64,000 nt of DNA, from the NCBI GenBank assembly GCA_977016875.1, contig CDRNST010000331.1, forward strand, positions 1,364,001-1,428,000, given 5' to 3'. Shown here in pieces: positions 590-59,803 of the stretch (its first letter is position 1; each line of letters begins with the position of its first letter). This stretch comes from Pavona decussata. Lineage: Eukaryota. Under the pieces are notes generated by a model. That model saw only the letters and a program-made list of their open reading frames with translations. It made no database searches and was not told where the DNA came from. Position numbers and translations under genes: made by a program.

Positions 590-772
590 GGCATTACTGT
601 CCTCTTGAAACACAGAGTCCAACACAGTATCCTTGTGTTGCGGGATCATGGACCAACCTCACAAACCTAAAATCACAAGAAGAGTGTTATGAGTGTCCGA
701 AGGGCTGGTTCTGTCTCAGAGCAAGCTCTGCACCAACTGCTTTATGCTTCACAGGACACTTCTGTCCACCAG
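590..772 (+). CDS. Exon 1 in window (Cys-repeat)
   Basis: tctag|GG CAT TAC TGT...CCA CCA G|gtatg; GHYCPLETQSPTQYPCVAGSW...GHFCPP; phase 1-1. Confidence 0.85.
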
Positions 773-47955: not shown

Positions 47956-47986
<31 letters not shown>

Positions 47987-50900
47987 TTTTGTTAGCTCCG
48001 CCAACAGACAATACGTTACAATAATGATCAACAACTTACAGAATAAAATAAGAACTCAAAATGGCAGGGAACCCGCCACTGATAGCGGACGGACTGCCAG
48101 GCTGAAAATATATGAACTACTTTCCCACTTCCGGGGCTAACCATTGTCGTTCTCGTTCAAAAGGCTGAGAAATCAAACATTCGTCTTGATGATGTACCAC
48201 CGCTGGTCAGTGCAGATACAATACTGAAGACTCAAGAAGGCTTTCAGGATGTCATTGTGAAGGAGGAGACAACTGGGCAGGCACGAGCAGAAGAACAACT
48301 CTCCAATGAACAAGCAGAAGCCTACCGCCGGCAGATGGGAGACAAGTTCTGTGCTATGGTGGTAAGGAGCTTCTTATACAACTCTTTATTGCGTGGTAAA
48401 AATGGACTGTTTCATCTTGAGATTCAAAAGCTAGAACCGCCTTGCACAGGAAAATAAGTAGCACCACAGGAAAGTACTGCTCAGTAGCTTTCATTTGAAT
48501 GGTCACACTTTAGGATTTCATCCACAGACTCAAAAGTAAGAACCATTTTGTACAGCATATAAACAGCATCACAGGAAAGTACTGCTCAGTAGCTTTCATT
48601 TGAATGGTCACACGTTCATCCACCGTCTTAGGGTTAAACCCGTTTTTCTTGTTTTATACCAGGATGACCTTGTAACATCCGGGTCTCTATACGCTGATCA
48701 AGCGGAACAAATCAAGCGAGAGCAAATGGAATTGGAGGAGAAGATGTCACGTGATCTGGCTCAGCAGCGCGCCCAGCAGACAGCGCTGCTAAAGGAAAAG
48801 CTTGCGCAGAGGAGGAGAGAGCGAATGAAGAAGCTGAAAGAACAGCAGGAGCTGGAAAAAGCCAAGGTAAAATACACAGTTCTTTACGTCATGAAAGGTT
48901 ATAGGTACTTTCATGTCTTAGCAACGTTTGAGCAGCTGTTGAGTGAACTCGAACACAATAGCCAAATAAGAATCTGCAAACAGGGGATTCTTACAGGAGC
49001 TGCCGGTCTCATTGTTTTCTTGCGCTCAAGATGGCAAGGATTTAGTGAATTAAGAGAAAATTAGAGTTTTCGTGTAGATGTACATTAGAACTACGGGGAG
49101 CAGGGATGGCGCAGTGGTGAGAGCACTCGCCTCCCATTAATGTGGCCCGGGTTCGATTCCCGGAGTTGACGCCATATCTGGGTTGAGTTTGTTGTTGGTT
49201 CTCGTCCCTGCTCCGAGGGTTTGTCTCCGGGTACTCCGGCTTTCCTTCCTCCACAAAAACCAACATTTCCAAATTCTAATTCAACCAGGAAACAGTGGAC
49301 GAATAACCACTCTGTGGATGTGCCACTGAAATTCCCATTTATTTATTTATTTTTATTTATTATTTATTTATAGACGTGGTTTTGAATGTCGACAATGTAG
49401 AGAGACGTGACAACAATTTTCATGTAACTGGTCACGTAATGTTGTCACGCATCAGATTCTGAACTTGTCACATAATTCTTGCAGGTCATCAGCGAGGGTG
49501 GTGACGTAGAAGCGTTACTGAAGCAGCAGGAGCAAGAGACAGCTGCTCTTGAAGCCAGTTTTGAGGCAGAGGAGGCACGCCACACGGCAGAGATTGTCAA
49601 GAAACTCAACGAAGAACACATGGACAATGTTCAACAAGCTCACAGGGCTTTGCTGGAGAAGGTGCGTTTGTTTGAAACGATCTGACTTTAGAATGATGTA
49701 TTATTCAGTGAGTGGGACAGGCAAACTCGGAAAAATGAAATCCGAGTTCTCCCAACAAGAGTCAAACCTAAGACCTTCCGATTACTAGTTCGGATGCTCT
49801 ACCACTGAGCTACAGGAGACTTGTGGGAGCTAGGGCCATTAAACTAGGTTCATGGGACAAACATCCAGTATACTGGTATTATCTGAATGTGAACGTGTCG
49901 CATAGGCGTAATGGAATAAATGTGATGGAATATTTTTAGCGTACAATTGATGATAATTTCTGTGCTTAAGCTATTCATCTCACACTTACAACCCAAGAGG
50001 CGTGTTTTTACGGTGGTTGTTGGCTCTGTCCTTCCTTTGATTTTGTAGTTTCGTGTCAGTAGTAAAACTAAAAGAGGCAACTGCTTATCAAGTCTGCTTC
50101 GGTTCAATTTCAGTTCACCAAAGACAATCTTGATGCAGTTCTGCAGCAGCAGATAATGGATCAGTTTAGAAAGGATAACGAAGCTCTTCAAGATCACCTG
50201 GAACAACGAAAGCTAAAATCTCTGGAAGATACCAAGGTAATAACCAGGATTGTATTCTACGTGGTGCCGTGACTATTTCTGATTTGTCTGTAAGGGTCAC
50301 ACCTCTTTGGAAAGTTTTACGAAAATTCCCTTTCACCGGTAAAACCTGTTTGGTTTCTTCTTTGTTACAGGCCAAACTTGCTGCTCGGCGGGCAAGGCGA
50401 CAAGAGGAGGTGCGCCGACAGTCAGAAGAGTCAGCTGCTAAGCGGATACTCGAAGAACAGAGCCAGGCCATCGCGGCCAACAGGCCAGTGGATGCAGATC
50501 ACGTCATTGTTCCTGACGTCATTATTCCGCGTGAAACGTCAGAAGAAGAGGTTGGAGCTTGTTATTTTCGTCTTTGTACGATTTAGTTCACTTCAGTTCA
50601 TATTCAAGACAACACGAATAAGATCCTACTCACTGTCCCTTGTAATTCCGAAAATTGTAATTGCATTGCTACATGAATTCTATTTTTAGCAAATCGGGAG
50701 CATGCTCGTCGTCTCACGAGGCGAAATTTGTCTGATTTTTTTTTTTTTTTTTTTTTTTTACCTTTTTCTAATTTGCTTTCACATTTTATAAGATTTTTCT
50801 TCGTTGGGGGCTGCTTACATGGGAGGAGGAAGACCCTAGAACTAGGAAGATCTTACAAGGCGGATCATGCTAGCGCCATAGGTTTTCCGTATTTAGTGTA

Positions 50901-53900
50901 CATGCAAAAGGTTGCACTTGGCTCTAGCTGAGAGACAGGAAGATCCTAGCACCATGTAAACTACCTTCGCTCAGAAGGTCCTAGCACTAGGGCCAAAAAA
51001 AAACATGGCGGCGTCCAGGCATTCAGCTTCTTAAGGCCGACAATTTCGTCTGAAAGTTCTGCATGTAAACAAAACGAAAAATGTTTTCGCCTTCTAGGAT
51101 ATTCCTCCCTCCATGCAAACAGCCCCTTAATTTGTGGAAGTACGATTATTCATGATTCTATTTGTGTTCAGTTTTATTCTCAGCTTGAAAATGTAATCTA
51201 CTTGTCAATTGCAGGCACTACGCAACGAACAGGAGCGGACATTAGCTGACATGCGCGAGAGACATGAACAAGACACCCACAAGATGAACGAGAAACTAGA
51301 ACGTGAATTGGTGGCAGACGAGGAACAAGCTGTCGAGCTGTTGGAAGCAGAGAAAGGACGACGACTCAGAGAGTTGAAGGACAGACACGCGGCAGAACTC
51401 GCGGCAAGATCAAAGGATATGTCGCCAGAGGAGGTGCAACAGGTAAAATGATCACGTGACTAGCGTTTTCCCGCCCTTGTGGTGGGCTGGTTTCTTTCTC
51501 TTCACGGGTGAAGCCTGGTGACTACCTTACGGGACATTTTCGCAACATCAAATTTTTGCGTTGGTTGCGCGAGGTTTTTCAAACCGCGATAACTTTAAGC
51601 TGCAAGTCGCTTATTTAATCGAAAATTTCATCAAATTCTAAAAAAATACTGTAGTTGTGATTTCGAAAAACAAAAGCTCCCATTTGACTTGACTGCGACC
51701 AGTCAGACTGGTAGGCTGGTTTAGTGATCACGGTTTTCTCACGCCGCACATAATCTGTTTTCAGCTTTTGGCCACTCATCAGCAAGAGCTGGATGAAATC
51801 ATGGAGAAGATGGATGCAGAAAGGCAACGACAGCAAGCTAATCTTCGTCAAAAGCTCCTAGAGAGAAAGAAACGGAAGCAAGACGCACAGAAACGAAAAC
51901 AAGAACGAGAGATGGCCAAGGAACTACTGGAGCAGCAGAAGGAGCTCACTGAAGTGCGCTCTGAGCACGTGAGTAACATTACTATTGCACGTGAAGATCT
52001 CAAAAAAGGCACGTGGCACTGGTGAAATACTGTAAAATAAAGAAATGGCGATTTATTAGGTCGGTAATCAAATGGAATGATTCTTTTGTGGAAGAGAGTT
52101 TTTGCTGGAACAACACCTTTCTAACGGCAAGGGGCACGCCTTAAAAGTGTTGCTGAAGCGTAGGAGAAATTTGATAGGAAATGTGCGAAATATTTATATC
52201 ACTAAGAAAAAATACGTGTCTTTTGTTTGTTGGCAGGTTAAGCAAGCTGAGAAACAAGCAATGATTGAAGGAATTAGGGAAAATGGGTCAGAAGCAGCCG
52301 AGTTTGTTATTAGAAAGGTAAGAGAGAAAATCTGTTTACTTTGAGGTGGATGTTGTTCATTAGGTCGTATTTTCCACTGGCTGAGGAACGAAATAAGTGG
52401 AAAATGTTTTCTCACATACCGCTGGAGCCTGGGTCCGAGGGGTTTTTGAGTCACGTGCTCAGTGTTATTTGTCAGTTGCTTTTTTGCTGTGCACCATTGC
52501 TGACGTATATTTCAGAGCCCCAGTTCCCACCCAACCCTTCGTTTGAGTTGATAAGATACACTCTGTTGGTTAGATATTCTTTATTAAGATTGCCAGCATA
52601 GAGTCTTACTAAGCTTATATATGTTGTTTAATATTACTGTATTTTTGCCTACATTACGTTTAATGTTAGGCTGTATTGGTTTGAGAAATAAAAGACTCAG
52701 TTGGCGGCGGTCAGCTTGACAATGGCTCCCAGAGGTGTGTGAGAATAACAATCAATTCAGTAAAGAAAATAAAGAAATGTATCTAAAACAATTTTGTTAT
52801 TGACAGGTTCTCGAGAAGCGTCACAGCCAGGAGCTTAAGGATTTAGAGCGTATGTTCCAAGAAGAGAGAAAGGTGGCAGTGGATGAAGCGCTTGCCAAGA
52901 TGGAAGAAAGACATGCACAGGAGAGCGATGAGCTACGCGCACTGAACGAGAAAGAGCTCAAAGAACTTGACAAGCAACATCTAAGCCCAGAGGACCTGCA
53001 ACAAAGACGCGCGCAGTTACTGAATCAGCAACAGCTGCGTCAAAGCGCGCTGGATAAGAAACATGCGGAACAACGGAAACAGATACAACATGATGTGCTG
53101 TCTGACTGGGAAGTGAGGTTTGCTCGCGCCAAGCTGGAACTTAAGGAGAAGCATTATCAGGTTTGTAGCTATTAAAGTTGCAAATTTCTTTTTCTCTGAG
53201 GCTTAAAGGGGCACTGTGACGACGATTTTGGTGTCGTTTGGTCAAAACGCAAATATTTGACAAGGAACCTTTTTTGTCTAACATGAATTGCTGTTCGAGC
53301 GCCGGGAAGAAAATGCTTCTGGGTTTCTCCGAACAAGAACAAACTGTAATAAGTTTTTAGCAACAACACACTGGAAAAACTTTAAAAAAAGCCGGCCATA
53401 TTTTGCAGTTGCAATCCATTTCCATCCTAGCCATCCGCAGCCAAACATAATTAATATTGTTTCTGTGCACTAATAGGGTTATTGTTAACAAATGTGGACA
53501 ATTATTTTGACGATACTATCGATTCAAGTATGTTTTAATGGCTATTCGAAGTACACAAAAAATAGGCGACACTGCCCTTTCAAGCTACGCACCCTCTCTA
53601 GAAAAATGGTTTCTCATTGACCATAGGTCATGATGGGTACTATCCTTTCAAACCTTATTAATTCCCCCACCCCTCCCCTCCCCTTTAAAAAGACCTAAGA
53701 TTTTTGTCCGGGAAAACTCGGGTTTTGCTGTAAAGACAACACCCATGCGATCCGCTCTCTCCACTAAAACAAACACACAGATTTAGACAACAGACATTGT
53801 GGATAGGGAATGTAATGAAAGCGAAACAGAATTTGGTCAATATTCACGCGTCAACGTTACAAAACTCTCGAGTTTTACCAATGACCTTACCTTTCTCCTC

Positions 53901-56900
53901 TCTCCCTCCCCTCCCTCAGGAATACGCTGATGCACTGAATGAGCTGACTCCGGAGCAGGCGGAAGAGCACAGGCGGTCGGTAGAGAAAGCTTTGGCGGCT
54001 GCGCGAGAACTTGAAGTAGTGAAACAGAAATTGGATGAACAGCGATTAGAAAACGAAGAAAAACTCAGACAGGAAAATGAAGGTTTGTTAACTTTGTGCG
54101 TTTTCTTAACACTTATCAATATCTGTAACGGGGTTAGTTTCAAAACAAACTGTGGTGCTTCGTCGGTGTGGAGTGGAGTGGAAATGAATGTTTGGTTTTC
54201 TCAAAAGAGTGGAAAAGGTAATCCAGCGACCGTAGAGATTCGAGTGTTGACGTTTCGAGCGTTAGCCCTTCGTCAGAGCGAAATCGATCCTTCGACTTGT
54301 TCGGCTTGTTTTCAAAAAATTCTAAAGTGGTTACTTTTGTTGTTTTAGCGTTTGAAACTGAACAACAGAAGAAGTTACAGAACGAACTTTCAGCCTTCGA
54401 CAAACAGCTGGAAGAAGAAGCCGAGTTGGAGCAGAAGAAGAACGAAAAGGCGATCCTCGCTTTGAACGCTCGCAAGGAAGCGCTGTTGAAAGAAAAGAAA
54501 GCCAAGGTCAAACAAGAAATGGAGAAAATGAGCAAGCAAGGGTCGTCCAAGGAAGAGCAGGAAGCCATCTTGAAAGAACACAGTAAAGACTTGGCTAAAC
54601 TGATGAACAAGATGGATGCGGACAGAATGAGAATGCAGAGCTCACTTGAGGAACGACTGAAGAAAAGACGAGAGGCTAAAAGACAGGCCAAGGTATGTTC
54701 GCTGAAGGGTAATGGCCGCTATTGAGAGTGGTCACTCGCGCTCGCATTTCTTTAAGCTTTTTGCTAGTGTCCCCGATTAGTCGAAACAGGACAGAAAAAT
54801 CCCTACGGACAGACAACAAAAGGTTTATTGTCTTAAAAAATTTAAACCATAACAATAGGCAAAGTTTGATATGTGCTCTGCGCTAAATACATTGGCACTT
54901 AAATAAAGTGATTTTTTAATATTGTTGGAACTGAAAAGTATGAGGCGCACTTAATAGTTTGTGTTGGTATCTTGTAGGTCGACGAACTGACGAACCGAAA
55001 CGAAGAAGAAAAGCGGGAATTTGAAGAGAAAGTGCAATCGGAACGCGACCGAGTACAAGCCGAAGAGGTGCTCGCCTTGAAGGAGAGCATCCATGTAGAC
55101 AACCTCGTGGCCGCTACGATCGAGTCCGAAGCTGCACCACCTCCTCCACCACGAATGATGCCGGACAGTTATCGATTAGCGGCACCATTAAGCGAAGGTG
55201 AACTAGCGTCTTTGTTGCTGTCATCACCGCTGTACCAGAAGATCGAAGGCATCAAGTCTCTGTTGAGTGGTGGTGCCGGCAAGGGTGGAGCAAACTACAG
55301 TGCTCCCGGTAAGGACTGGGACTGACTTTGTTATGTAACGTAGGGCGCGTAAAATATGGGTTTTTTTTTTTTTTTTTGCTTCATTGTCGAAGTTAAAAGT
55401 ACTGTCAACTTAAGGTTATAGTTTCCGAGGAATTTTAATATTCTTAAAAGAATGTTCGCCTAAGGGAACCTATCCGACCGAATATCAGGAGATAACAGAG
55501 ACTTTAAGCATCGACGACGGGCACGGCAACGGCGACGGAGAAACCGAGGAAAGACTGAGGAGAGGACGCGGTTGCGTCGCGAAATTGGAAGCAGTTAAGC
55601 AGGCGCAATAGGACGACAACTTCCCTCGAAGAGGATTAAATACGATGAGCGCTTTCCATTCACCAAAACTTTTCGATTTGAATTTTCGGAAATTTCGGTC
55701 TCGAATGGAACGGGCTTATGCTCGGTCGGTTTCCACTTTTCGGGAACAGCTGTTCAAAAAGGTTGTCCTACATTTTCGAAAATCTTTTGCGGAGAAGATG
55801 CTGTTCCATTCGATTCCCACCCGAAATTTTTGTAATTTTTCGTCGAATTGAAAGCACCCATCGAGTCTTCGTTAAAAGAAGTCAGAAATCGATTTTAATA
55901 ATGAAATAACCGATGAAGAATTTTTACTGCTGTTAACGAGAACGTGTTTGTCGCAGTTGCAGTTTTCCGATGTATAAACAATTCAGACCATTTGATATAT
56001 TTTTAGGTCGTAATAAAAATCACCGATATAACTAGAAATAGCAACTAGATTAACATTAATTTACTTCAAATGTTCTGCATCGAAGGCTGGGATTTCAAGA
56101 AACGCTTTAGCAGTGCGAGCACGCGTGAGAATTTCTTTATCTTTACATCTAAAAATTTGAACTGAAACCTACGATATGACACAGTGGTTTGTGGTTTGGA
56201 TGCTATTTTCGAGCAACATAGACTGTTTATTTTTCTCCAGCTTAAATGTAAATTAAAAGTTCTAGTTTGTCTTGTTTTGAATAAGAAAAAGTAATATTAC
56301 ACTGATGTTAGAGAGAAACATCGATAATTAGTGTCAGACTCGCAAGTCATTTCTAATTTTGCAGGCATCGTCACTAGTCTCACTAGCTTTCTGTCTTGTA
56401 ACAGCCGACTGATGAAGTTATTATAGTTTCGGAAAGAATAAAACAAAAACTCAACGCGTACTTTTCCTACGGTTGCCTTAAGTGCCAAGCAATATTAAAA
56501 ATATCATTTTTTGGGGGCGAAACGGAGGTAAAATATGTGAAATGCTACTCACGTTTTCGAGCAACGCCAAACGAAGCTTTCTCACGTCGGGCCCCGGAGC
56601 AGAACGTCTTGATATTTCCCGCCAGACATGCGCAATGTGACATTTGGGTTTTCCCTCACAATCTCACGTCGCCGTTGCCGTTCCCGTCGTCGATGCTTAA
56701 AGTCTCTAACGTTACCAAAGTAGGGGGGGGGGGGGGGTCGTTACCTCCATATTTAGAAGCTTCTTGCGTTTGGTACATTCGAGAATCGGAACTTTCGGGA
56801 GTTTGCAACTTTTAAATGTCTAAAACGTATACGAGTTATTTAGTTGAATTTAGATCTGTGAAAAGTAATGTATATGGCAATAACGTTCTTTTTGAACAAC

Positions 56901-58862
56901 AATCTTGAGAATTTACACGCTATACGTCTTTCAAATATTTCTTCAGTGTTGTACATTTTACAGTCCCCGCTGTCTATACACATTCTCCTCCGCCGGACCT
57001 TACCACACAGTACCTCGCTATCAATCGATAAAACAAATCACTAAAATTCTTCATTGTTTTTCAGCTCCTGGCGAAGGTTATATCGACATCAAAGATGACA
57101 CGCTGTGGGGAGGTGACGATGAACTTGTACCTGTCGATCTCAACACCTTACCTGCCCGCGCGTTCGTTACGTACAAGTTTGGTTCGTTCATTGTAGACTT
57201 GTTAGCCGTCCACTGCCACCATCTGCCTGTCACGCTTCTGCTCGCGGACAAACTGCCTCCAAACACGCATCTCCAGAGAAACGCCTTCCGCAACTCGTTC
57301 TTCTACGACGCTACCAACCGCATTTTGTACGTGCGCACGGAGCGGATGGACAACGTTGGAGAGTTCGTGTTAGTCTTGGTTCACTGTCTGTCACATATCG
57401 CTTGTGGCGACTTGCGTGACGACTCACATCCGGGCTTCTTGAAGGAGTTCCATCACGCCCTCGCCGTCATGTGCGATGACTTGTTCTTCGCGCGTTATCG
57501 CCGTTCTTCTGCGCTTGCGCGCACGCTGTCGTCACTTCCGACAGATGATGATCTAGAGAGTGCTAGCCGGATGTTGTTGGAGTCCGTATTTGGCGATGCC
57601 CATACAGAAGCTGACAAGTCAAACGTCGTGGAAGGACTCTTGGATGCGAAGCTACTGCGTGGTGCAAACAAAGACGGCGTGCATTTTACAAATGATGGCA
57701 TCGTAGAGCGATTGTCAAAGTACAGCAATTTTGCCGTTGAATCCAAACTGCGCTCGTTCCTCGGTGATGTTGAAGATAAGGCTACTCAAGCTCGGTTGCA
57801 AGGTACAGAAGAGTTTATTGACAAGAGACTTAACGAGCTTCAAGGCCCACAGGCAAAAGAAAGGCCAATTTCACGCTATGTTCAGTCACGAGGCAATTTG
57901 ATGTCACGCGGTATGTCACGGCAGATTTCCCGAGCGATGGCCACGTCACGCACTGCTACTGGTTTACCGATCTCTGGAAAATCACCCGCTGTTCGGCCAG
58001 TAGAAGACGAAGATCTTTACAAGACGTTCCTACAGGTATGTTCTGCCTTTGTTGGTCTCAGTTGTACCGTAACTAGGTTGTCTTTTGATTGTCGATAATA
58101 ATTACTGTGTGATTGGTTTTTCGTTTCTTTAGCTCTTTAACAGTTACTGGTTAAAATATCTCGTACAACATGCCCTTACCATTCAGAAGAAAACGCTGTT
58201 TATTTCAACCAACCAGGAGCTTATCCTCGTTTTCTCGCTCTTGTCTTCGTTTCCGTGTAATTTCCCGCGCTTTTTACCCATCGCATTTTTTCCCGCGCTT
58301 TTTAGCCCTAGTTTCCCGCTTGCGCCACCAGTTGCTTGTTTTCCCGCGCTTACCTCCAATTGCTTGTTTTAGCTTCAAGTTCTGATTACTGGTGGTAGAT
58401 GAGAGGTTTAATTAATGTATTACCTATGACATAACTTTACCATCACAGGTTCAAGTAGATGATATGGATGACACTGTAGACGCATTGAACCAAGAGTTTG
58501 CGCAGCTTTCCAGACAATCCCTCGAAATCACCACAAACCTACGAGAGCTAGAACAAGAACTACTGGCTCAAACAGACCTCTTCAGAGAGTCAGCGGAGGG
58601 CAGCATGGAACATGCGCAACACAAGAATGCTGTGCGTGAAACAACCACCAAGATCACCACAGCAAAGGCTTCGCTTGAGTCCATTGAACTGCAAAAGAGT
58701 AACTGCCTAGAGCGGCTGAACTTGTTCAAGAAAAGACTAGAGGAAAAACAAGCCCAGTTGGAGCAACATGCCAGTAAACCAGAGAGCGAAAGAAAACAAC
58801 AAGCAGAGAGGAAACTACAGTCCGCCATTGGCAAGTCACCCAAGAAAAAGACGAAGAAGTAA
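590..58862 (+). CDS. Giant multi-exon gene (57 coding exons in window, 5'-partial): Cys-rich GCC2/GCC3 (ephrin-receptor-like) repeat single-pass membrane protein with coiled-coil cytoplasmic tail, >=~6,700 aa
   Basis: All exons listed below are bounded by AG/GT with compatible phases. Lengths sum to 20,093 nt, in frame to TAA at 58860-58862. Continuous CPxGxYC repeats, then a TM helix, then coiled coils. Confidence 0.9.
921..1228 (-). mobile_element. tRNA-derived SINE (V-domain-like), CpG-decayed copy
   Basis: Reverse complement matches 49095-49370 and it aligns with 27284-27535; A/B-box-like head and CTCCGGGTACTCC core. Confidence 0.8.
1424..1596 (+). CDS. Exon 2 (Cys-repeat)
   Basis: aaag|GA ACC...GCC AAG|gtaag; GTKRGNEFPCPAGTY...DVRGAK. 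Confidence 0.85.
1840..1921. mobile_element. Short fold-back MITE with 9-bp TSD
   Basis: Arms TAGCTTGCGAACGCAGACGTATTTCTGGC / GCCAGAAATACGTCTGTGTTTGCAGGCTA, flanked by cGTAGCAAG and tGTAGCAAG. Confidence 0.7.
2306..2401 (+). CDS. Exon 3 (Cys-repeat)
   Basis: tttag|AAC CAA...TAT TCG|gtaag; NQLEGCKQCVAGYYCP...ANYS. Confidence 0.85.
2956..3147 (+). CDS. Exon 4 (Cys-repeat)
   Basis: cccag|GGT CCT...GAT GAG|gtaag; GPGAFVCTTCEAGHYC...GHYCLRGDE. Confidence 0.85.
3625..3747 (+). CDS. Exon 5 (Cys-repeat)
   Basis: aacag|AAT GCC...AAA GTG|gtaag; NAYPIKCPNGTF...GHYCEPEGLTKV. Confidence 0.85.
3763..3800. repeat. (CAT)n microsatellite
   Basis: Direct reading; a similar tract lies at ~17930-17961. Confidence 0.85.
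3938..4120 (+). CDS. Exon 6 (Cys-repeat)
   Basis: ctcag|GCT AAT...CCA GAG|gtaag; ANVCPPGYFCPEG...PKTCPE. Confidence 0.87.
4626..4820 (+). CDS. Exon 7 (Cys-repeat)
   Basis: tatag|GGC TTC...ACT TCT|gtaag; GFFCPTGTTIPQPCPSG...GFYCSGRAYTS. Confidence 0.87.
4924..5101. mobile_element. Palindromic MITE (copy 1)
   Basis: AATAGCCCAATTTCGATA...TATCGAAATTGGGCTATT; second copy at 20211-20371. Confidence 0.78.
5478..5762. mobile_element. MITE of AGAGCGGTTTTCAATTGAGTGT family, CpG-decayed
   Basis: Aligns by eye with 40255-40523 and, inverted, with 42836-43110; remnant at ~58100-58390. Confidence 0.65.
5785..5936 (+). CDS. Exon 8 (Cys-repeat)
   Basis: aacag|GCA CCA...CCA GG|gtatg; APPEGSPTGGLCPKGGYCP...CDP. 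Confidence 0.87.
5985..6435. repeat. 67-bp minisatellite, ~6.5 copies, inside a - strand SINE-like element (~5970-6625)
   Basis: CAGCATGAAG recurs at 6041, 6108, 6175, 6241, 6308, 6375. Confidence 0.92.
7502..7876. repeat. 125-bp tandem triplication inside a TTAA-ended MITE (~7474-7924)
   Basis: ATTCTCCTATCTTG at 7502, 7627, 7752; near-identical units; single-unit relatives at ~35150-35250 and ~35600-35790. Confidence 0.9.
7977..8145 (+). CDS. Exon 9 (Cys-repeat)
   Basis: ttcag|G TTC TAC...CAA GAG|gtaca; FYCAGDTNPEPTGPC...CPVGTYQE. Confidence 0.87.
8150..8507 (-). mobile_element. LINE (CR1/L2-like) 3' remnant
   Basis: ORF 8301..8534(-) ends GQRTFHYRAVSLWNSLP...FKKEL, typical ORF2 C-terminus, then an AT-rich 3' tail. 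Confidence 0.8.
8880..9014 (+). CDS. Exon 10 (Cys-repeat)
   Basis: ttcag|ACT GAT...CCA CCT|gtaag; TDRAEQCTNC...PTACPP. Confidence 0.87.
10145..10297 (+). CDS. Exon 11 (Cys-repeat)
   Basis: tacag|GGT ACA...ACT CCA|gtaag; GTYNPNDG...GYYCTGASPSPTP. Confidence 0.87.
10651..11000 (+). CDS. Exon 12 (Cys-repeat)
   Basis: ttcag|AAT AAT...TAC AG|gtatt; NNGSLFSNITYGGICPAGYYCP...CVPGTY. Confidence 0.87.
12049..12214 (+). CDS. Exon 13 (Cys-repeat)
   Basis: ttcag|C AAT GTC...CCC CAG|gttag; NVTGLEACLQC...CPSGTWNPQ. Confidence 0.87.
12430..12642 (-). mobile_element. Decayed tRNA-derived SINE-like element
   Basis: tRNA-like head on - strand near 12570-12640; heavily decayed. Confidence 0.5.
12684..13017 (+). 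CDS. Exon 14 (Cys-repeat)
   Basis: tttag|CTG AGT...ACC G|gtaag; LSLARENECPPCP...NLTEPT. Confidence 0.87.
13090..13379. mobile_element. Non-autonomous element with long terminal hairpin (copy 1)
   Basis: Reverse complement of 44237-44530; hairpin loop deleted in this copy. Confidence 0.75.
13676..14875 (+). CDS. Exon 15 (1,200 nt, Cys-repeat)
   Basis: aacag|GA AAG TGT...TAT G|gtaag; overlaps ORF 13798..14889. Confidence 0.9.
15658..16043 (+). CDS. Exon 16 (Cys-repeat)
   Basis: ttcag|GT TCA...TGT GAG|gtatg; within ORF 15645..16142. Confidence 0.88.
16056..16304. mobile_element. MITE with CAGGG-type end and internal CTCGCA/GGTTAG repeats
   Basis: Imperfect TIR; flanking direct repeat ATTAT (TAATTATCAGG occurs at both ends). 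Confidence 0.55.
16891..17280. mobile_element. Kolobok-like MITE (TTAA-AGGG...CCCT-TTAA)
   Basis: TTAA flanks and AGGG termini; relatives at 43678-44064, 53204-53583, 62231-63311. Confidence 0.75.
17379..17574 (+). CDS. Exon 17 (Cys-repeat)
   Basis: actag|GAT GGA...ACA A|gtaag; DGTYMKDPLADACLDC...GLSNIT. Confidence 0.87.
18160..18784 (+). CDS. Exon 18 (Cys-repeat)
   Basis: tgaag|GT TGT...CTG AG|gtaac; within ORF 18102..18788. Confidence 0.87.
19155..19408 (+). CDS. Exon 19 (Cys-repeat)
   Basis: cacag|T GAT TGC...AGA G|gtaac; DCTPCRPGKFC...GSHEPTPCLR. Confidence 0.87.
19522..20100 (+). CDS. Exon 20 (Cys-repeat)
   Basis: cttag|GA CAT TAC...GCA G|gtaag; HYCAVAELSNVTGPC...HKCPA. Confidence 0.87.
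20211..20371. mobile_element. Palindromic MITE (copy 2)
   Basis: Same termini and internal arms as 4924-5101. Confidence 0.78.
20565..20751 (+). CDS. Exon 21 (Cys-repeat)
   Basis: tccag|GA ACC...AAA GG|gtgag; TFNNRTHGESVADC...GVICPK. Confidence 0.87.
20888..20930 (-). ncRNA. Minimal hammerhead ribozyme motif, stem II degraded
   Basis: - strand GACU CUGAUGA U GAC...UUU GAAA C GUC AGUC; perfect stem I. Confidence 0.6.
21595..21809 (+). CDS. Exon 22 (Cys-repeat)
   Basis: tacag|T CAC TAC...ACT G|gttag; HYCPAGTPIPIPC...PTDGVT. Confidence 0.87.
22094..22255 (+). CDS. Exon 23 (Cys-repeat)
   Basis: tttag|GT GAT...GCT G|gtaag; DVCWIGHFCPEG...PEPCPA. Confidence 0.87.
22755..25715 (+). CDS. Exon 24 (2,961 nt, Cys-repeat)
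   Basis: atcag|GC TGG TAT...GCA G|gtttg; corresponds to the 984-aa ORF 22769..25723. Confidence 0.92.
26104..26223 (+). CDS. Exon 25 (Cys-repeat)
   Basis: gatag|GT CAC...GCT G|gtaag; HFCVNGSTTSTPTDGVTG...GCPA. Confidence 0.86.
26468..26956 (+). CDS. Exon 26 (Cys-repeat)
   Basis: ttcag|GA ACA...ACA G|gtatg; TFYNDTGLQNETGC...YMNHT. Confidence 0.87.
27284..27535 (-). mobile_element. tRNA-derived SINE (V-domain-like)
   Basis: Same family as 921-1228 and 49095-49370. Confidence 0.8.
27593..27832 (+). CDS. Exon 27 (Cys-repeat)
   Basis: tttag|GT GCT...GGA G|gtacg; ASYCYVCPAG...TGKCKG. Confidence 0.87.
28387..28563 (+). CDS. Exon 28 (Cys-repeat)
   Basis: tttag|GT TTC...GCA G|gtgcg; FFCTSGVNVSAP...CDVCPA. 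Confidence 0.87.
28765..29118 (+). CDS. Exon 29 (Cys-repeat)
   Basis: tccag|GT AAA...ACA G|gtagc; KYCNGTTVTPASC...CPAWNKTT. Confidence 0.87.
30030..30635 (+). CDS. Exon 30 (Cys-repeat)
   Basis: tttag|GT GAC...GAA C|gtaag; within ORF 29975..30643. Confidence 0.88.
30964..31446 (+). CDS. Exon 31 (Cys-repeat)
   Basis: tccag|GT ACT...TCC G|gtgag; TYNDRLGLMAIGNC...FFCPS. Confidence 0.87.
32196..32406. mobile_element. TTAA-ended (piggyBac-like) MITE
   Basis: TTAATCCTTTA...TAGAGGGTTAA; related copies at ~2586-2790, ~11400-11620, ~16700-16890. Confidence 0.6.
32440..32687 (+). CDS. Exon 32 (Cys-repeat)
   Basis: attag|GA AAC...TGC GAG|gtaaa; NYTALSCPPG...GSYCE. Confidence 0.85.
33114..33510 (+). 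CDS. Exon 33 (Cys-repeat)
   Basis: cacag|GCA CCT...CCA G|gtttg; APAQTTPKGPC...QECEP. Confidence 0.86.
34226..34282. repeat. (TTTA)n(TTTG)n microsatellite forming the pyrimidine tract of exon 34
   Basis: Direct reading; abuts the cgcag acceptor at 34287. Confidence 0.85.
34288..34707 (+). CDS. Exon 34 (Cys-repeat)
   Basis: cgcag|GT TAT...CAT C|gtaag; YNQINTGQPDCDPC...KFCLH. Confidence 0.85.
35425..35592 (+). CDS. Exon 35 (Cys-repeat)
   Basis: gacag|AT TAT...AAT G|gtaac; YWYPVEAGPCQEGYYCP...GRYCLN. Confidence 0.85.
36298..36475 (+). mobile_element. tRNA-like SINE-type repeat (copy 1)
   Basis: GTAGCTTAGTGGTAG...GGTTTGACTCC; inverted homolog at 49705-49875. Confidence 0.65.
36492..36935 (+). 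CDS. Exon 36 (Cys-repeat)
   Basis: tttag|GA ACA...CCA G|gtgtg; within ORF 36479..36943. Confidence 0.87.
37054..37565. mobile_element. PIF/Harbinger-like MITE with GATAGT subterminal repeats
   Basis: TTA|AGCCCTGTTCAAACGGCGCATGA...TCATGCGTCATTTGACCAGGGCT|TTA. Confidence 0.8.
37905..38250. repeat. ~105-bp tandem repeat, ~3 copies (also 48460-48625)
   Basis: AAACAG(C/T)ACCACA(A/G)GAAAGTACTG at 37937, 38041, 38147. Confidence 0.85.
38394..38989 (+). CDS. Exon 37 (last Cys-repeats)
   Basis: cacag|GT GGT...CCT ATG|gtttg; within ORF 38366..39043. Confidence 0.87.
39057..39195. mobile_element. Short palindromic MITE
   Basis: TATAGAGTGTGTGCACGACGGCCATGTTGGAGGA...TCCTCCAACATGGCCGCCGTGCACACACTCTATA. 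Confidence 0.78.
40255..40523. mobile_element. MITE (TIR TAGAGCGGTTTTCAATTGA), inserted in a TTAA-type MITE
   Basis: TAGAGCGGTTTTCAATTGAGTGT...ACATTCAATTAGAAACCGTTCTA. Confidence 0.75.
40667..41521 (+). CDS. Exon 38 (membrane-proximal ectodomain, RRRRR furin-type site)
   Basis: ttcag|GAT GCT...ACC CAG|gtaaa; within ORF 40610..41596. Confidence 0.88.
42096..42147 (-). ncRNA. Hammerhead-like motif in a Penelope-like remnant
   Basis: - strand CA CUGAUGA U GACA-GAAGUCUA-UGUC GAAA CAUGU U; stem I imperfect. Confidence 0.55.
42405..42670 (-). mobile_element. LINE (CR1-like) 3' remnant
   Basis: - strand translates TNYYKNSFSYSGAILWNSLPCNLREAESLGQFKRLLKEL*, then 3' UTR and a short-repeat tail. Confidence 0.8.
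42836..43110. mobile_element. MITE, same family as 40255-40523, opposite orientation
   Basis: TAGAGCGGTTTTCAATGG start; internal CCAATC/GATTGG motifs. Confidence 0.65.
43489..43675 (+). CDS. Exon 39 (transmembrane helix)
   Basis: aaaag|CCC CAG (alternative in-frame acceptor starting 43495)...CCA G|gtggg; WGVIWGMTIFMLVCIIMLVIAVIIW followed by RPK. Confidence 0.82.
43678..44064. mobile_element. Kolobok-like MITE copy
   Basis: Aligns with 16891-17280; ends GGCGACACTGCTTCTTTAA. Confidence 0.72.
44237..44530. mobile_element. Non-autonomous element with long terminal hairpin (copy 2)
   Basis: Hairpin AACAATAAGATTATT...CTATCGCGTGATAGCTGAT-loop-ATCAGCTATCACGCGATAG...AATAATCTAATTGTT. Confidence 0.75.
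44544..44839 (+). CDS. Exon 40 (juxtamembrane cytoplasmic)
   Basis: tacag|GT ATT...AGT GAG|gtatg; ...FELENFNVRTLYDKLEDQ... Confidence 0.87.
45333..45489 (+). CDS. Exon 41 (cytoplasmic)
   Basis: tgcag|GGT GGT...CCT G|gtgag. Confidence 0.82.
46086..46262. other. Assembly gap (177 N)
   Basis: Run of N in the intron between exons 41 and 42. Confidence 0.99.
46312..46586 (+). CDS. Exon 42 (cytoplasmic)
   Basis: tgtag|GC GTG...GAA CAA|gtaag; phase matches exon 41 across the N gap. Confidence 0.83.
47043..47220. mobile_element. Tc1/pogo-like MITE
   Basis: CAGTCAAACCTCG...GAGGTTCCACTG|TA; internal GTGTCCGT repeats. Confidence 0.7.
47473..47712 (+). CDS. Exon 43 (coiled coil)
   Basis: aatag|GAA GAA...GAA GAG|gtaaa. 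Confidence 0.86.
47722..47900 (+). mobile_element. SINE fragment with Deu/Nin-like domain
   Basis: CTCGGATAAGAACGATAAACCGTAGGTCCTGTC...AAAGAACCCACAC...TTCGAAAAGAGTAGGGG resembles the Deu/Nin SINE domain (recognised from memory). Confidence 0.55.
48164..48361 (+). CDS. Exon 44 (coiled coil)
   Basis: aaaag|GCT GAG...ATG GTG|gtaag; AEKSNIRLDDVPPL...FCAMV. Confidence 0.8.
48663..48866 (+). CDS. Exon 45 (coiled coil)
   Basis: accag|GAT GAC...GCC AAG|gtaaa. Confidence 0.86.
49095..49370 (+). mobile_element. tRNA-derived SINE (V-domain-like), near-intact
   Basis: A box TGGCGCAGTGG, B box GGTTCGATTCC, core CTCCGGGTACTCCGG, (ATTT)n tail. Confidence 0.85.
49485..49661 (+). CDS. Exon 46 (coiled coil)
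   Basis: tgcag|GTC ATC...GAG AAG|gtgcg. Confidence 0.86.
49705..49875 (-). mobile_element. tRNA-like SINE-type repeat (copy 2)
   Basis: - strand reads GTAGCTCAGTGGTAGAGCATCCG...GGTTTGACTC; flanks shared with 36298-36475. Confidence 0.65.
50114..50236 (+). CDS. Exon 47 (coiled coil)
   Basis: ttcag|TTC ACC...ACC AAG|gtaat; FTKDNLDAVLQQQIMDQF...LEDTK. Confidence 0.83.
50371..50550 (+). CDS. Exon 48 (coiled coil)
   Basis: tacag|GCC AAA...GAA GAG|gttgg. Confidence 0.84.
50806..51127. mobile_element. Harbinger-like MITE
   Basis: GGGGGCTGCTTACATGG...CCATGCAAACAGCCCCT. Confidence 0.6.
51215..51442 (+). CDS. Exon 49 (coiled coil)
   Basis: tgcag|GCA CTA...CAA CAG|gtaaa. Confidence 0.86.
51765..51968 (+). 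CDS. Exon 50 (coiled coil)
   Basis: ttcag|CTT TTG...GAG CAC|gtgag. Confidence 0.86.
52237..52317 (+). CDS. Exon 51 (coiled coil)
   Basis: ggcag|GTT AAG...AGA AAG|gtaag. Confidence 0.84.
52807..53160 (+). CDS. Exon 52 (coiled coil)
   Basis: gacag|GTT CTC...TAT CAG|gtttg. Confidence 0.86.
53204..53583. mobile_element. Kolobok-like MITE copy
   Basis: TTAAAGGGGCACTGTGAC...GGCGACACTGCCCTTTCAA. Confidence 0.75.
53920..54082 (+). CDS. Exon 53 (coiled coil)
   Basis: ctcag|GAA TAC...GAA G|gtttg. Confidence 0.86.
54246..54279 (-). ncRNA. Minimal type I hammerhead ribozyme motif (Penelope-type)
   Basis: - strand GCU CUGACGA A GGGC-UAAC-GCUC GAAA C GUC AAC: intact core, stem II, GUC site, one stem I mismatch. 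Confidence 0.7.
54349..54692 (+). CDS. Exon 54 (coiled coil)
   Basis: tttag|CG TTT...GCC AAG|gtatg. Confidence 0.86.
54978..55308 (+). CDS. Exon 55 (end of coiled coil, poly-Pro linker)
   Basis: tgtag|GTC GAC...CCC G|gtaag. Confidence 0.86.
55497..56707. mobile_element. 1.2-kb non-autonomous DNA transposon, ~40-bp TIR, 3-bp TSD; nested MITE at ~55647-55859
   Basis: AAC|AGAGACTTTAAGCATCGACGACGGG...CCCGTCGTCGATGCTTAAAGTCTCT|AAC. Confidence 0.85.
57065..58035 (+). CDS. Exon 56 (globular cytoplasmic domain with HCLSH motif)
   Basis: ttcag|CT CCT...CTA CAG|gtatg; within ORF 56905..58098. Confidence 0.88.
58449..58862 (+). CDS. Exon 57, terminal coding exon (coiled coil, basic C-terminus, stop)
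   Basis: cacag|GTT CAA...AAG AAG TAA; ends SPKKKTKK*. Confidence 0.88.
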   Translation, partial: VQVDDMDDTVDALNQEFAQLSRQSLEITTNLRELEQELLAQTDLFRESAEGSMEHAQHKNAVRETTTKITTAKASLESIELQKSNCLERLNLFKKRLEEKQAQLEQHASKPESERKQQAERKLQSAIGKSPKKKTKK

Positions 58863-59300
58863 ACATTTGTAGAGTTTAGTTAGAATAGACGTAAGCTTAC
58901 CAAGTGCTATCACGTCATAGTTTTGTATTATTTATTTGCGTTGATTGCGAAGTTATTTAAATGAACAAAACTTTAAAATGAGAGATAGTAGAACCTTGTA
59001 AAACCGGATCACGTACTGAACGACAAGAAAAAGTTATTTTTGTAATATTTTTGTATAAGTGAAACGATAGCAGTGCTAAGTTACAATCCTGATGTAGATG
59101 ATCTTATTTCTGTATTCCAAGGTTTGGAATGATAATTTTCAACGCTTTTTTCACTCACTCACCTGGTTGACAACTAGTCGAGTGAATTTTATAATATTTA
59201 CGTACCTTTTCTTATCAAGTAGAAAACATTAAGAAACACCTTTTGGTGTTAAAGTAATTTATAATTTAACATCAATTCAATACCATTCACGAAAATGTAA

Positions 59301-59306
59301 AATAAA
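59301..59306 (+). terminator. Candidate polyadenylation signal AATAAA
   Basis: AATAAA ~440 nt after the stop, with GT-rich sequence downstream. Confidence 0.45.
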
Positions 59307-59803
59307 GTAAGCATTTCTTAACGTAATAGTGTGGTATTTCGTAAGACTGAATAGAACATCCGTCATGTCTTGTTTTTGCTCGAGATGACAGTTGTAAATT
59401 CTTTGATTCCATAGCTTCAATTAAAAGTGTTTTTGTAGACAACTCCCTGGTCTCATCTCTTCAGCTATTTGTATTTCTGGTGGACCATTTTATGATTTTA
59501 TACAGCGGAGAATGAACTTTCACAGTTACGTTCTGGACCGGCGGACTTGTTTTTAGGTCCAATTGTAGCCTAAGAGGAATTTTGGGGGTTTTATTAGACC
59601 ATCGCCTAATCTCCTTGAATTGTCCCTGCGACTAATCTTTTTTATGAAATAGGTAGTTCACACGAAGGAACTTGGTCCCCGGGGCTAGTCGTGGGGACTA
59701 GTCGCAAGGGACTTGTCCCTTCGTGTGTGAATCAGCCATATTTTCACATAAGATCACTGTAATGACCTGTTATATCAAAGGAACAAAGCAAGTCAGTACG
59801 TTA

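Follow-up and report, generated by a model that had tools for sequence, protein, structure and literature searches.

Do the cysteine-rich repeats, the transmembrane (TM) helix and the long tail encoded across the 64,000 nucleotides of Pavona decussata DNA analysed here (the window) belong to one protein, and if so, what kind of protein is it and what might it do?

One expressed gene across the window

The preliminary description had proposed 57 exons in a single phase-consistent frame, and an independent reconstruction arrived at the same span and the same number: all introns of the model are GT..AG and there are no internal stops in 19.8 kb of coding sequence on the + strand (Table 1). A chance frame is excluded, because a single exon is by itself an open frame of 987 codons. 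The 6,594 amino acids encoded in the window comprise a Cys-repeat ectodomain of 4,922 aa, one TM helix and a cytoplasmic tail of 1,648 aa, close to the >4,700 aa, one TM and ~1,680 aa first described, and this type I architecture supports the earlier view of a receptor-like protein.

Transcript evidence was provided by spliced Logan contigs of 15,395 nt (X4), 14,806 nt (X7) and 5,282 nt (X1), which link positions 40667-41521, 43489-43675, 44544-44839 and 45333-45489 at GT..AG joints, corresponding to exons 38 (the end of the ectodomain), 39 (the TM helix), 40 and 41 (both cytoplasmic), and by a 938-nt contig in X8 that spans the last three of the four. This support represents four runs from four studies and at most three samples (X1 and X7 are the same sample), and the contigs were compared with ~6 kb of the window, up to 45999. 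Ectodomain, TM and cytoplasmic exons thus co-occur on spliced contigs, as the earlier claim of a single transcript required. Past 45490 the contigs run for 5,027-5,073 nt, whereas the coding sequence modelled there amounts to 4,402 nt, which leaves room for the probable 3' UTR (Table 1). That at least two neighbouring genes, or a decaying repeat array, have been read as a single frame is extremely improbable; the exon borders come mostly from an ad hoc gene model, transcript joints fixing those of four exons only, and the comparison covered 6 kb, but the spliced contigs span the boundaries between ectodomain, TM helix and tail, an identical fused architecture is found in many distant species, and the coding sequence runs without a stop.

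An assembly gap lies inside intron 41. The donor of exon 41 reads ...CTG/gtgaga and leaves one base over, for a modelled split codon (G + GC), and exon 42 starts at 46312 behind a T-rich tract and ag, at the acceptor ttttttttttgtag/GCG; the reading frame passes over this splice and not over the N gap, the pairing of the two exons being modelled. A small extra exon may be hidden within the gap, 46086-46262.

The frame had also been described as incomplete at its 5' end, and indeed Cys-repeat coding density on the + strand starts ~36 kb upstream of the window. In the gene model, an ATG with a signal peptide lies ~36.5 kb upstream, and the upstream part adds 2,297 aa to give ~8,890 aa in total over 89 modelled exons; at this size, ~8,900 residues, the gene would rank among the largest of its genome. 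Upstream there are recently duplicated repeat exons of ~100 aa, with 71-90% nucleotide identity. What lies in the window is thus the 3' two thirds of a single expressed gene, whose product is a giant type I membrane protein.

Table 1. Features of the gene within the window (positions counted from the first letter of the window).
Feature	Position	Strand	Basis or remark
In-window coding sequence	590..58862	+	57 exons, 6,594 codons and stop; splice-aware dynamic programme with manual curation
Exons 1-37: Cys-repeat array, CxxGx[YF]C units, spacing mostly 15-20 aa	590..38887	+	repeat pattern; weak Pfam
Exon 24, the largest: 2,961 nt, 51 Cys motifs	22755..25715	+	open frame 22730-25720, 997 codons
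Exon 38: conserved non-repeat membrane-proximal ectodomain module, 285 aa	40667..41521	+	transcript-covered; 3' end 41521 joint-fixed
Cupredoxin-like beta-sandwich, exon-38 aa 108-257, without copper ligands	40988..41437	+	VIA-align, Foldseek
Disordered loop, aa 140-157, inserted in the sandwich	41084..41137	+	pLDDT <50; RRRRR at 41093-41107
Exon 39, carrying the single TM helix (43513-43584)	43489..43675	+	both ends joint-fixed; hydrophobicity scan
Exon 40: cytoplasmic juxtamembrane; conserved ~56-aa motif 44618-44785	44544..44839	+	transcript joints
Exon 41	45333..45489	+	joint 44839->45333; contig pieces end at 45490
Intron 41, assembly gap 46086-46262 inside	45490..46311	+	phase 1 fits over splice (G + GC)
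Exon 42: low-complexity linker, then helical region begins	46312..46586	+	frame runs on into exon 43
Exons 43-55: ~850-aa charged, proline-poor helical rod	47473..55308	+	composition
Exon 56: conserved C-terminal globular domain, 323 aa	57065..58035	+	75 word-search matches; 739 representative relatives
Zincin-fold core, aa 22-142	57130..57492	+	motif H106-C-L-S-H110 ... D119 at 57382-57423
Exon 57: terminal helical segment and Lys-rich tail	58449..58862	+	stop codon 58860-58862
Probable 3' UTR	58863..59445	+	AATAAA at 59301, ATTAAA at 59420

Conserved modules on both sides of the membrane

The in-window ectodomain consists of 10.3% Cys and contains 223 CxxGx[YFWH] motifs and 126 N-x-S/T sequons. 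Its repeats had been assigned to the GCC2/GCC3 (Ephrin_rec_like) type, and this is supported by the open reading frame 38363-39040, which scores 24.7 bits with PF07699 Ephrin_rec_like against a gathering score of 23.1; among twelve repeat stretches it is the only one, and a single exon, above the cut-off, with four at 19.6-23.0 bits and seven without a score, and the crinoid orthologue reaches 28.6 bits. Judged by these scores, the repeats are at best divergent members of the family.

The AlphaFold2 model of exon 38, at the membrane-proximal end of the ectodomain (pLDDT 83.6, pTM 0.81), contains a sandwich that VIA-align places, at moderate Z, with plastocyanin 7zqe_M (Z 6.7, 92/98 residues aligned) and pseudoazurin (Z 6.4), nearly all of the best 50 rows being cupredoxin-fold proteins, while Foldseek gives several amicyanin and plastocyanin chains at a probability of 0.96-0.98. 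The predicted structure therefore has the Greek-key beta-sandwich of cupredoxins. The type 1 copper ligands (His, Cys, His, Met) are missing, and His is conserved nowhere in the exon-38 alignment. By phmmer the exon matches Asterias, crinoid and Diadema proteins (E 2.6e-42 to 4.5e-32) and by tblastn Chromosphaera (E 1e-15). Nine residues are invariant (P167, C170, P194, Y196, N203, D209, L216, G238 and C263) in the alignment, where the Glandiceps, Fabomonas and second Chromosphaera rows have no scored match and were placed by hand from the TM helix; C170 and C263 could be disulfide-bonded. A disordered loop interrupts the sandwich within the aligned range 110-257, and a polybasic or dibasic cluster is found at the matching alignment position in most giant relatives, departing from a strict furin site in several of them (e.g. 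SRKLL) and absent from the vertebrate clade.

The TM helix occupies aa 4923-4946, with a Kyte-Doolittle value of 3.1 against 1.66 for the next best segment over the 6,594 aa scanned, and its exon is 57% identical to the crinoid protein. Behind it, exon 40 finds proteins by phmmer from echinoderms through Fabomonas, Chromosphaera and Diphylleia, and vertebrate proteins weakly.

The cytoplasmic rod is made of 50-60% E/D/K/R/Q and 1-4% P+G, with a recurrent unit of ~45-80 aa ending in ...L..KL..RR; the unit of exon 43 occurs in up to 4 copies per relative. It is collinear with the crinoid protein in exons 45-46, 49-50 and 52-54, and exons 43, 44, 47, 48, 51 and 55 gave no HSP there by tblastn. 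A heptad scan of the tail gave weak signal, and the tail may be a single alpha-helix instead of a coiled coil. The tail pattern '...L..KL..RRR' had raised a suspicion of kinship to EVC2/limbin, which we reject: PF12297 EVC2_like is absent from the cytoplasmic exons and from four full-length relatives (a whole-genome scan with PF12297 gave no match, and neither did the controls of that scan). The same absence from the four relatives, and the lack of any detected ciliary motif or family, count against a ciliary or flagellar membrane protein that tethers the ciliary membrane to a cytoplasmic or axonemal scaffold, or senses contact for it. With Chromosphaera left out, most named carrier lineages (ancyromonads, Diphylleia, Hemimastigophora, Percolomonas and animals) build cilia or flagella and would fit such a role, which we nevertheless regard as distinctly unlikely.

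The C-terminal domain is predicted with a pLDDT of 92-98 across aa 11-140 of exon 56. Its core aligns best to Wss1 5xbn (Z 9.0, 108 aligned, rmsd 3.0), followed by abylysin (7.9), Wss1 5ln5 (7.8), YbeY (7.6), selecase (7.0) and Spartan (6.7), values of 6-9 being moderate and best Z values of 7-8 common by the note of VIA-align itself. With zincin-fold proteins in 24 of the best 25 rows we assign the core to the zincin fold; Foldseek agrees weakly, as do the Atlas shapes, which are YgjP/SprT/WLM-like. H106 is conserved in 46/46 sequences and H110 and D119 in 45/46 each, and D119 is a candidate third metal ligand, as judged from this conservation. The catalytic Glu of HExxH is found in 0/46 sequences, residue 107 being C/A/T/S/V in a motif H-[CATSV]-x-[AS]-H, and therefore the domain is not filed as a peptidase. 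An active, receptor-coupled metalloprotease would have the zincin fold, the two His in the active-site helix and the conserved Asp in its favour, but the missing Glu after the first His and the lack of a match to any Pfam peptidase family make it very unlikely. Searches for named counterparts returned little: ESM Atlas feature searches gave unnamed phage clusters only for the C-terminal exon and its own cluster only for a catfish paralogue, PDB sequence-profile searches with the cupredoxin-like and zincin-fold domains gave nothing relevant, and Pfam matches on the non-repeat exons were at chance level, so that neither signature domain has a Pfam or PDB sequence match.

Relatives and two animal lineages

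The protein had been called an orphan, which no longer applies to its kinship, since 739 representative relatives were found for the C-terminal domain at E<=1e-3 and the architecture recurs, but does apply to its function. The homology search of the non-repeat exons across eukaryotes that had been suggested earlier, run exon by exon, brought up wide relatives and no match to a well-characterised protein, and the retrieved database names are all "uncharacterized", "hypothetical" or gene-model identifiers, in agreement with the statement that no animal member had been characterised. A full-text literature search for zebrafish si:dkey-103g5.4 and mouse Gm32742 found nothing functional, the zebrafish name occurring in no paper and Gm32742 in a single RNA-seq table. 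Automatic annotation breaks up relatives of this kind, and the database matches are mostly short pieces.

The full architecture was found in Chromosphaera, Fabomonas, Percolomonas, crinoids, sea stars, sea urchins and acorn worms, that is, in ichthyosporeans, ancyromonads, heteroloboseans, echinoderms and hemichordates. Relatives of 3,812-7,499 aa from Chromosphaera, Fabomonas, Percolomonas and a crinoid show a Cys array, a single TM and the C-terminal domain near the end, three of them also scoring for an N-terminal signal-like segment. The modules are likewise matched by further proteins from echinoderms and hemichordates, which measure 4,536-6,496 aa. In phmmer searches against echinoderm and hemichordate proteins, E values were 1e-80 to 1e-93 for the C-terminal domain and 1e-32 to 1e-42 for exon 38. 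The coral protein carries the cupredoxin-like juxtamembrane domain, the single TM and the C-terminal H..H..D domain in the order of the family. Because the family is spread far beyond cnidarians, over protists, echinoderms and hemichordates, the role in cnidocyte discharge that had been suggested for it is unlikely as a cnidocyte-specific one.

In the tree, which shows two animal clades, the protein of the window falls into clade A (support 93/83) alongside echinoderm and hemichordate orthologues: Asterias rubens LOC117306372 (4,536 aa), Antedon mediterranea (4,701 aa), Anneissia japonica LOC117121631 (3,985 aa), Diadema antillarum (4,581 aa) and Glandiceps talaboti LOC144439946 (6,496 aa). 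Their modules and module order are identical to those of the coral protein, the crinoid being collinear over exons 38-56 with 33-57% identity in individual exons, but they are shorter than the ~8,890 aa modelled for the coral, and none has a described function. The second lineage, B, reaches birds and mammals, and its paralogue in this genome is a second coral gene on the same contig as the window. Its members include teleost si:dkey-103g5.4, a rodent Gm32742-type gene (the Jaculus protein is named 'Predicted gene, 32742') and 'uncharacterized LOC' genes in sharks, frogs, reptiles, birds, bats, warthog and hyena. Like the coral protein, these still possess a TM helix between a cupredoxin-like juxtamembrane domain and a Glu-less zincin domain, whereas in vertebrates the Cys repeats are almost all lost, leaving an ectodomain of roughly 130-470 aa without the basic loop, above a clade-specific cytoplasmic region of about 500 aa. 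The coral gene belongs to a family without prior description that is spread over distant eukaryote lineages, with two animal paralogue lineages, both present in this genome. Very few large receptor-like proteins are common to animals and distant flagellate protists, and the two conserved domains of this one are absent from family libraries.

The distribution of conservation also bears on whether the protein is a passive structural surface fibre, as part of a glycocalyx, coat or cell-matrix adhesion filament, with a tail that only anchors it to the cortex and with no signalling by cleavage or force. The huge, repetitive ectodomain, glycosylated according to its sequons, would suit such a fibre, the recent duplicates among the upstream repeat exons fit selection for length over a specific ligand site, and the family is present in surface-associated flagellates. 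The strongest conservation, however, is found outside the rod (juxtamembrane module, TM helix, exon-40 motif and C-terminal domain), and the vertebrate members dispense with nearly all repeats yet retain these modules; we consider a purely passive fibre rather unlikely.

A possible tether or contact sensor and its counterparts

The explanation that we favour is a long surface tether or contact sensor, a role that is plausible from the anatomy of the protein, while for the explanation as a whole the chances are about even. Outside the cell, the very long, N-glycosylated, disulfide-rich rod would bind or probe something. A furin/kexin-type convertase may cut the polybasic loop, after which nothing but the shared beta-sandwich would hold the rod, and a pull could strain or free it. 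On the inner side, the cytoplasmic rod would keep the Glu-less zincin domain far from the membrane, where it may serve for the metal-stabilised docking of a partner and not for proteolysis. Two hypotheses follow: convertase cleavage in the split domain near the membrane, and metal-dependent docking of a partner at the Glu-less zincin domain. Function is testable, since sea urchin, sea star, zebrafish and probably mouse, all of them tractable, have relatives.

A bolder version, which we hold to be quite improbable, would have an ancient receptor, possibly as old as LECA, in which the convertase-cut, split cupredoxin-like domain is a force-releasable joint under a rod of hundreds of nanometres that only shared beta-strands hold in place; a pull would alter binding by the Glu-less, metal-binding zincin domain at the distal end of the cytoplasmic helical rod, and mammals would keep a version with a short ectodomain, the Gm32742-type gene next to NFKBIZ.

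A parallel drawn at the outset was with the cysteine-repeat modular proteins (CRMPs), which are multipass proteins with 5-9 TM helices (5 in Tetrahymena, 9 in Toxoplasma/Plasmodium) and Kringle, MAR and EGFR-type domains, a GAIN domain having been reported in the Tetrahymena members (PMC9670195). Like the coral protein they combine a large Cys-repeat ectodomain with a module next to the membrane, and a contact-sensing role is proposed for them too (PMC9670195). In contrast to their 5-9 helices, the coral protein has one TM; its membrane-proximal module is cupredoxin-like, and its long tail carries a zincin-fold domain. No Pfam match to Kringle, MAR, EGFR-type or GAIN domains was obtained on any exon scanned, and the membrane-proximal fold is cupredoxin-like and not GAIN. 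With a single hydrophobic segment in 6,594 aa, and with homologues of the signature domains far outside alveolates, membership of the CRMPs is rejected and the parallel does not extend to kinship. A CRMP-like trigger of regulated organelle discharge, of cnidocysts for example, would draw on the ectodomain type in common, on a membrane-proximal module that may be cleaved and on the GAIN domain reported for Tetrahymena CRMPs (PMC9670195). It is highly improbable given the single TM, the lack of Kringle, MAR or GAIN signal and a family that is older than cnidarians and persists in vertebrates.

Returning to the tether or contact sensor, its C-terminal core resembles the minimal zincins (Wss1/WLM, SprT/Spartan, selecase/abylysin and YbeY) in fold and in the two His on the active-site helix. 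It differs from them in that the family is without the catalytic Glu and without a Pfam or PDB sequence match, and in that the domain ends a membrane-anchored helical rod.

The Notch S1 site in the NRR, the GAIN/GPS of adhesion GPCRs and SEA domains are all cleaved close to the membrane, with the halves held together non-covalently. The coral fold is unlike theirs in being cupredoxin-like, its cleavage is hypothetical and not every member of the family has the basic motif; the likeness lies in an exposed loop with a convertase-type basic motif, which sits within a folded domain next to the membrane and beneath a very long ectodomain.

Gene model and transcripts

The host genome comprises 602 Mb, and the window (G000:C331:1364001-1428000, + strand, in the handle for genome and contig) has a GC content of ~40% with a single N run at 46086-46262. 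From the window start to ~39 kb, the + strand displays Cys-rich (~10%) stop-free stretches with CxxGx[YF]C motifs, and the further open frames are listed in the table. The exon model was built by a splice-aware dynamic programme with dicodon log-odds, GT/AG site scores and checks of phase and split codons, which was retrained on its own output and then curated by the repeat pattern. The resulting in-window model contains 57 exons and 6,594 codons with 0 internal stops and only GT..AG introns, with a few in-frame borders (exon 16 end, exon 3 and exon 44) being uncertain, and it agrees with the exon count and sizes of the preliminary description. Intron 1 carries a ~300-nt interspersed repeat (921-1228), for which at least 39 other genome copies with 80-84% identity were found when 40 of 2,877 candidates were scored.

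The preliminary description regarded the frame as 5'-incomplete, and Cys-repeat coding indeed starts well before the window: the + strand density of Cys motifs begins ~36 kb upstream and is unbroken to +40 kb, with almost none before that point or on the opposite strand. A signal-peptide-like exon, opened by an ATG 36,470 nt upstream of the window and closed by the donor gtaaga, is present, and a stop-free upstream chain of 32 exons joins window exon 1 in frame and adds 2,297 modelled aa. The modelled full-length protein is therefore ~8,890 aa, encoded by 89 exons over ~95 kb. Within this chain, ten exons each encode a single module (294-300 nt, ~98-100 aa); they are located ~18.8-32.6 kb before the window start (loci L004 and L006). 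Six of these ten are mutually 71-90% identical in nucleotides, so the repeat array looks to have been enlarged by recent tandem exon duplication. Several module exons have near-identical splice flanks, ttcag|TTGT ... ATAG|gtgagc.

We also investigated transcripts; one rival explanation for the frame is an annotation artefact. In 15 sequencing runs the share of the window's words was 0.14-0.29, near the exonic fraction. Assembled contigs of four runs (four studies, at most three samples, since X1 and X7 are the same sample) were aligned to 40000-45999. Contigs of X4 (15,395 nt), X7 (14,806 nt) and X1 (5,282 nt) cover 40666-41519, 43487-43672, 44541-44837 and 45331-45490; in X8 a 938-nt contig spans the last three of these blocks and the first joint lies on a separate 184-nt contig. 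Consecutive blocks are separated in the genome by 1,967, 868 and 493 nt with GT..AG borders, so the contigs are spliced and cDNA-like, connecting the final ectodomain exon with the TM exon and two exons of the tail. Beyond this part, the X4 contig continues for 8,825 nt on its 5' side and 5,073 nt on its 3' side. A single transcript is thus supported, with spliced contigs crossing from ectodomain through TM helix to tail, and the split of transcripts between exons 37 and 43 that would speak against the preliminary description was not seen. In exon 38, five base differences within 10 nt (40779-40788) separate the genome from the X1, X4 and X8 contigs and are absent from the X7 contig (by its record, X7 derives from the X1 sample); they are probably an allelic variant. 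Intronic stretches at 40200-40600, 43000-43400, 43800-44000 and 44200-44600 attract many short contigs with odd joints and loose ends, at a summed depth of thousands versus 40-110 on exons; these contigs probably stem from transcribed transposon copies at other genomic loci.

The N run sits in intron 41. The exon 41 donor, CTG|gtgaga at 45489, leaves one base over, and exon 42 starts at 46312, preceded by a T-rich tract with ag; the frame is re-established by the split codon G + GC and continues. Contig pieces end at 45490, whose base is identical to the first base of exon 42, and the contigs themselves run on, so this donor is used, its partner lying beyond 45999. Past 45490, the modelled coding sequence is 4,402 nt versus 5,027-5,073 nt in the contigs, and once the polyadenylation signals (59301 and 59420) are allowed for, ~40-210 nt stay unexplained, which fits either no missing exon or one small exon.

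Relatives and a second giant gene

Homology searches were run exon by exon. The C-terminal exon (57067-58035) matched 75 fragment-size proteins, including Mytilus (53% identity) and shark (44%), and a 15-sequence profile searched against 1.84 billion representatives returned 739 relatives at E<=1e-3, 188 of them at E<=1e-30. These include proteins of Chromosphaera perkinsii (7,076 and 6,410 aa), Fabomonas tropica (7,499 aa), Percolomonas (4,727-4,786 aa), Diphylleia rotans (3,948 and 1,118 aa), Spironema (1,021 aa), crinoids (3,985 and 4,701 aa), Diadema (4,581 aa), Asterias (4,536 aa), Glandiceps (6,496 aa) and Saccoglossus (1,326 aa), vertebrate sequences from sharks, rays, teleosts (si:dkey-103g5.4), lungfish, frog, lizards, turtles, crocodilians and birds, and mammalian ones from bats, warthog, hyena, lynx and Jaculus ('Predicted gene, 32742'). 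All are named 'uncharacterized', 'hypothetical' or by a gene-model identifier, except for a few predictions that are fusions with the adjacent NFKBIZ gene, in line with the earlier statement that no characterised animal member is known. The giant relatives scanned share a Cys-repeat array that starts close to the N-terminus, a single TM helix at residue 1,473-4,776 and the C-terminal domain near the end; a crinoid protein is collinear with the window from exon 38 through exon 56.

A tree of the domain core resolves two animal clades. Clade A (support 93/83) contains the window gene, Mytilus, echinoderms, hemichordates and a lungfish fragment, and clade B (90/89) a second gene of the host genome and all other vertebrate sequences. 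This second giant gene, which represents the lineage that vertebrates have retained, lies on the same contig ~324 kb downstream of the window (G000:C331:~1690001-1746038; loci L014 and L017-L023). In the turtle and bird predictions P0249, P0250, P0266 and P0268 the clade-B homologue is fused to NF-kappa-B inhibitor zeta (ankyrin-repeat Pfam matches), and therefore the two genes are probably neighbours in sauropsids. The lungfish Protopterus annectens has clade-B and clade-A members, P0118 and P0167 (LOC122808494 and LOC122808514), whose close LOC numbers hint that the paralogues are linked there, as in the host genome.

Features of the window gene (window positions) and of the clade-B gene (contig positions)
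Feature	Position	Strand	Remark
Non-repeat open frame	40604-41593	+	after Cys-repeat stretches
Frame with one hydrophobic helix	43408-43734	+	
Many charged helical frames	between hydrophobic-helix and globular frames	+	
Globular frame	56896-58095	+	400 codons
Last frame	ends 58862	+	
Exons 1-10	590-772, 1424-1596, 2306-2401, 2956-3147, 3625-3747, 3938-4120, 4626-4820, 5785-5936, 7977-8145, 8880-9014	+	gene model
Exons 11-20	10145-10297, 10651-11000, 12049-12214, 12684-13017, 13676-14875, 15658-16043, 17379-17574, 18160-18784, 19155-19408, 19522-20100	+	gene model
Exons 21-30	20565-20751, 21595-21809, 22094-22255, 22755-25715, 26104-26223, 26468-26956, 27593-27832, 28387-28563, 28765-29118, 30030-30635	+	gene model
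Exons 31-40	30964-31446, 32440-32687, 33114-33510, 34288-34587, 35425-35592, 36492-36935, 38394-38887, 40667-41521, 43489-43675, 44544-44839	+	gene model
Exons 41-50	45333-45489, 46312-46586, 47473-47712, 48248-48361, 48663-48866, 49485-49661, 50114-50236, 50371-50550, 51215-51442, 51765-51968	+	gene model
Exons 51-57	52237-52317, 52807-53160, 53920-54082, 54349-54692, 54978-55308, 57065-58035, 58449-58862	+	gene model
Clade-B Cys-repeat array		+	at least 30 kb, dense
Clade-B cupredoxin-like domain	~1727411-1727641		
Clade-B-only cytoplasmic region	1732306-1734550		~500 aa
Clade-B zincin-like domain	1745514-1746026		

Conserved modules and predicted folds

The conserved modules are the second half of exon 38, kept even in vertebrates (invariant P167, C170, P194, Y196, N203, D209, L216, G238 and C263), the TM exon, a ~56-aa cytoplasmic motif (exon 40) shared by sequences ranging from Fabomonas to vertebrates, a helical unit of ~80 aa in several copies per protein, and a C-terminal core (exon 56 residues 5-150). 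None of them matched Pfam, and sequence-profile searches of the PDB gave no match. Tail residues ~260-1,110 past the TM helix are 50-60% E/D/K/R/Q and 1-4% P+G, with three strong and two weaker copies ending '...L..KL..RR.'.

The exon 38 model (pLDDT 83.6, pTM 0.81) has one disordered segment, residues 140-157, containing RRRRR. Almost all of its top 50 VIA rows are cupredoxin folds (plastocyanin Z 6.7, 92/98 residues aligned, model residues 110-257), and Foldseek gave a probability of 0.96-0.98 for several amicyanin/plastocyanin chains. Because the alignment runs across the disordered segment, this loop is a predicted insertion within the sandwich. No conserved copper ligands were found in this cupredoxin-like domain. 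Most clade-A and protist sequences carry a basic cluster (RRRRR, RRRLL, SRKLL or KR) at the equivalent alignment position, where the vertebrate clade has none.

The C-terminal domain was modelled with pLDDT 92-98 over residues 11-140. A VIA-align fold search against 48,161 chains ranked Wss1 first (5xbn, Z 9.0, 108 aligned, rmsd 3.0), followed by abylysin (4jiu, Z 7.9), Wss1 (5ln5, Z 7.8), YbeY (1oz9, Z 7.6), selecase (4qhf, Z 7.0) and Spartan (6mdx, Z 6.7), with aminopeptidase N catalytic domains next; Foldseek and the Atlas shape search pointed weakly in the same direction. The predicted fold is a minimal zincin. Its active-site helix reads H106-[C/A/T/S/V]-x-[A/S]-H110, then D119, with H106 in 46/46 sequences and H110 and D119 each in 45/46. 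The rival reading is an active protease; the Glu after the first His is absent from all 46 sequences, and we infer a metal-binding pseudo-protease.

Proposed mechanism and known systems

Anatomy, expression, conservation and predicted folds are results, and the mechanism that we infer would be as follows. Outside the cell the protein would form a long glycosylated rod, and a convertase may cut inside the split sandwich, leaving the rod held non-covalently. Inside, a helical spacer would reach ~125 nm (0.15 nm per residue, if helical throughout), and the Glu-less zincin domain may serve as a docking site. Rival proposals for such a molecule are a passive surface fibre and a ciliary tether. The preliminary description also noted that CRMPs carry such repeat arrays, and a CRMP-like trigger of discharge is a further rival; membership of the CRMPs fails because these are multipass proteins with 5-9 TM helices (PMC9670195), whereas the window protein is single-pass.

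The component parts are of known kinds and the overall type is a giant single-pass repeat receptor. No description of the family, its two signature domains or their combination was found in the libraries and literature searched. Notch S1, GAIN and SEA domains are analogues for a membrane-proximal cut with a non-covalent hold, and it is this that the putative cut inside the membrane-proximal domain of the window protein would resemble.
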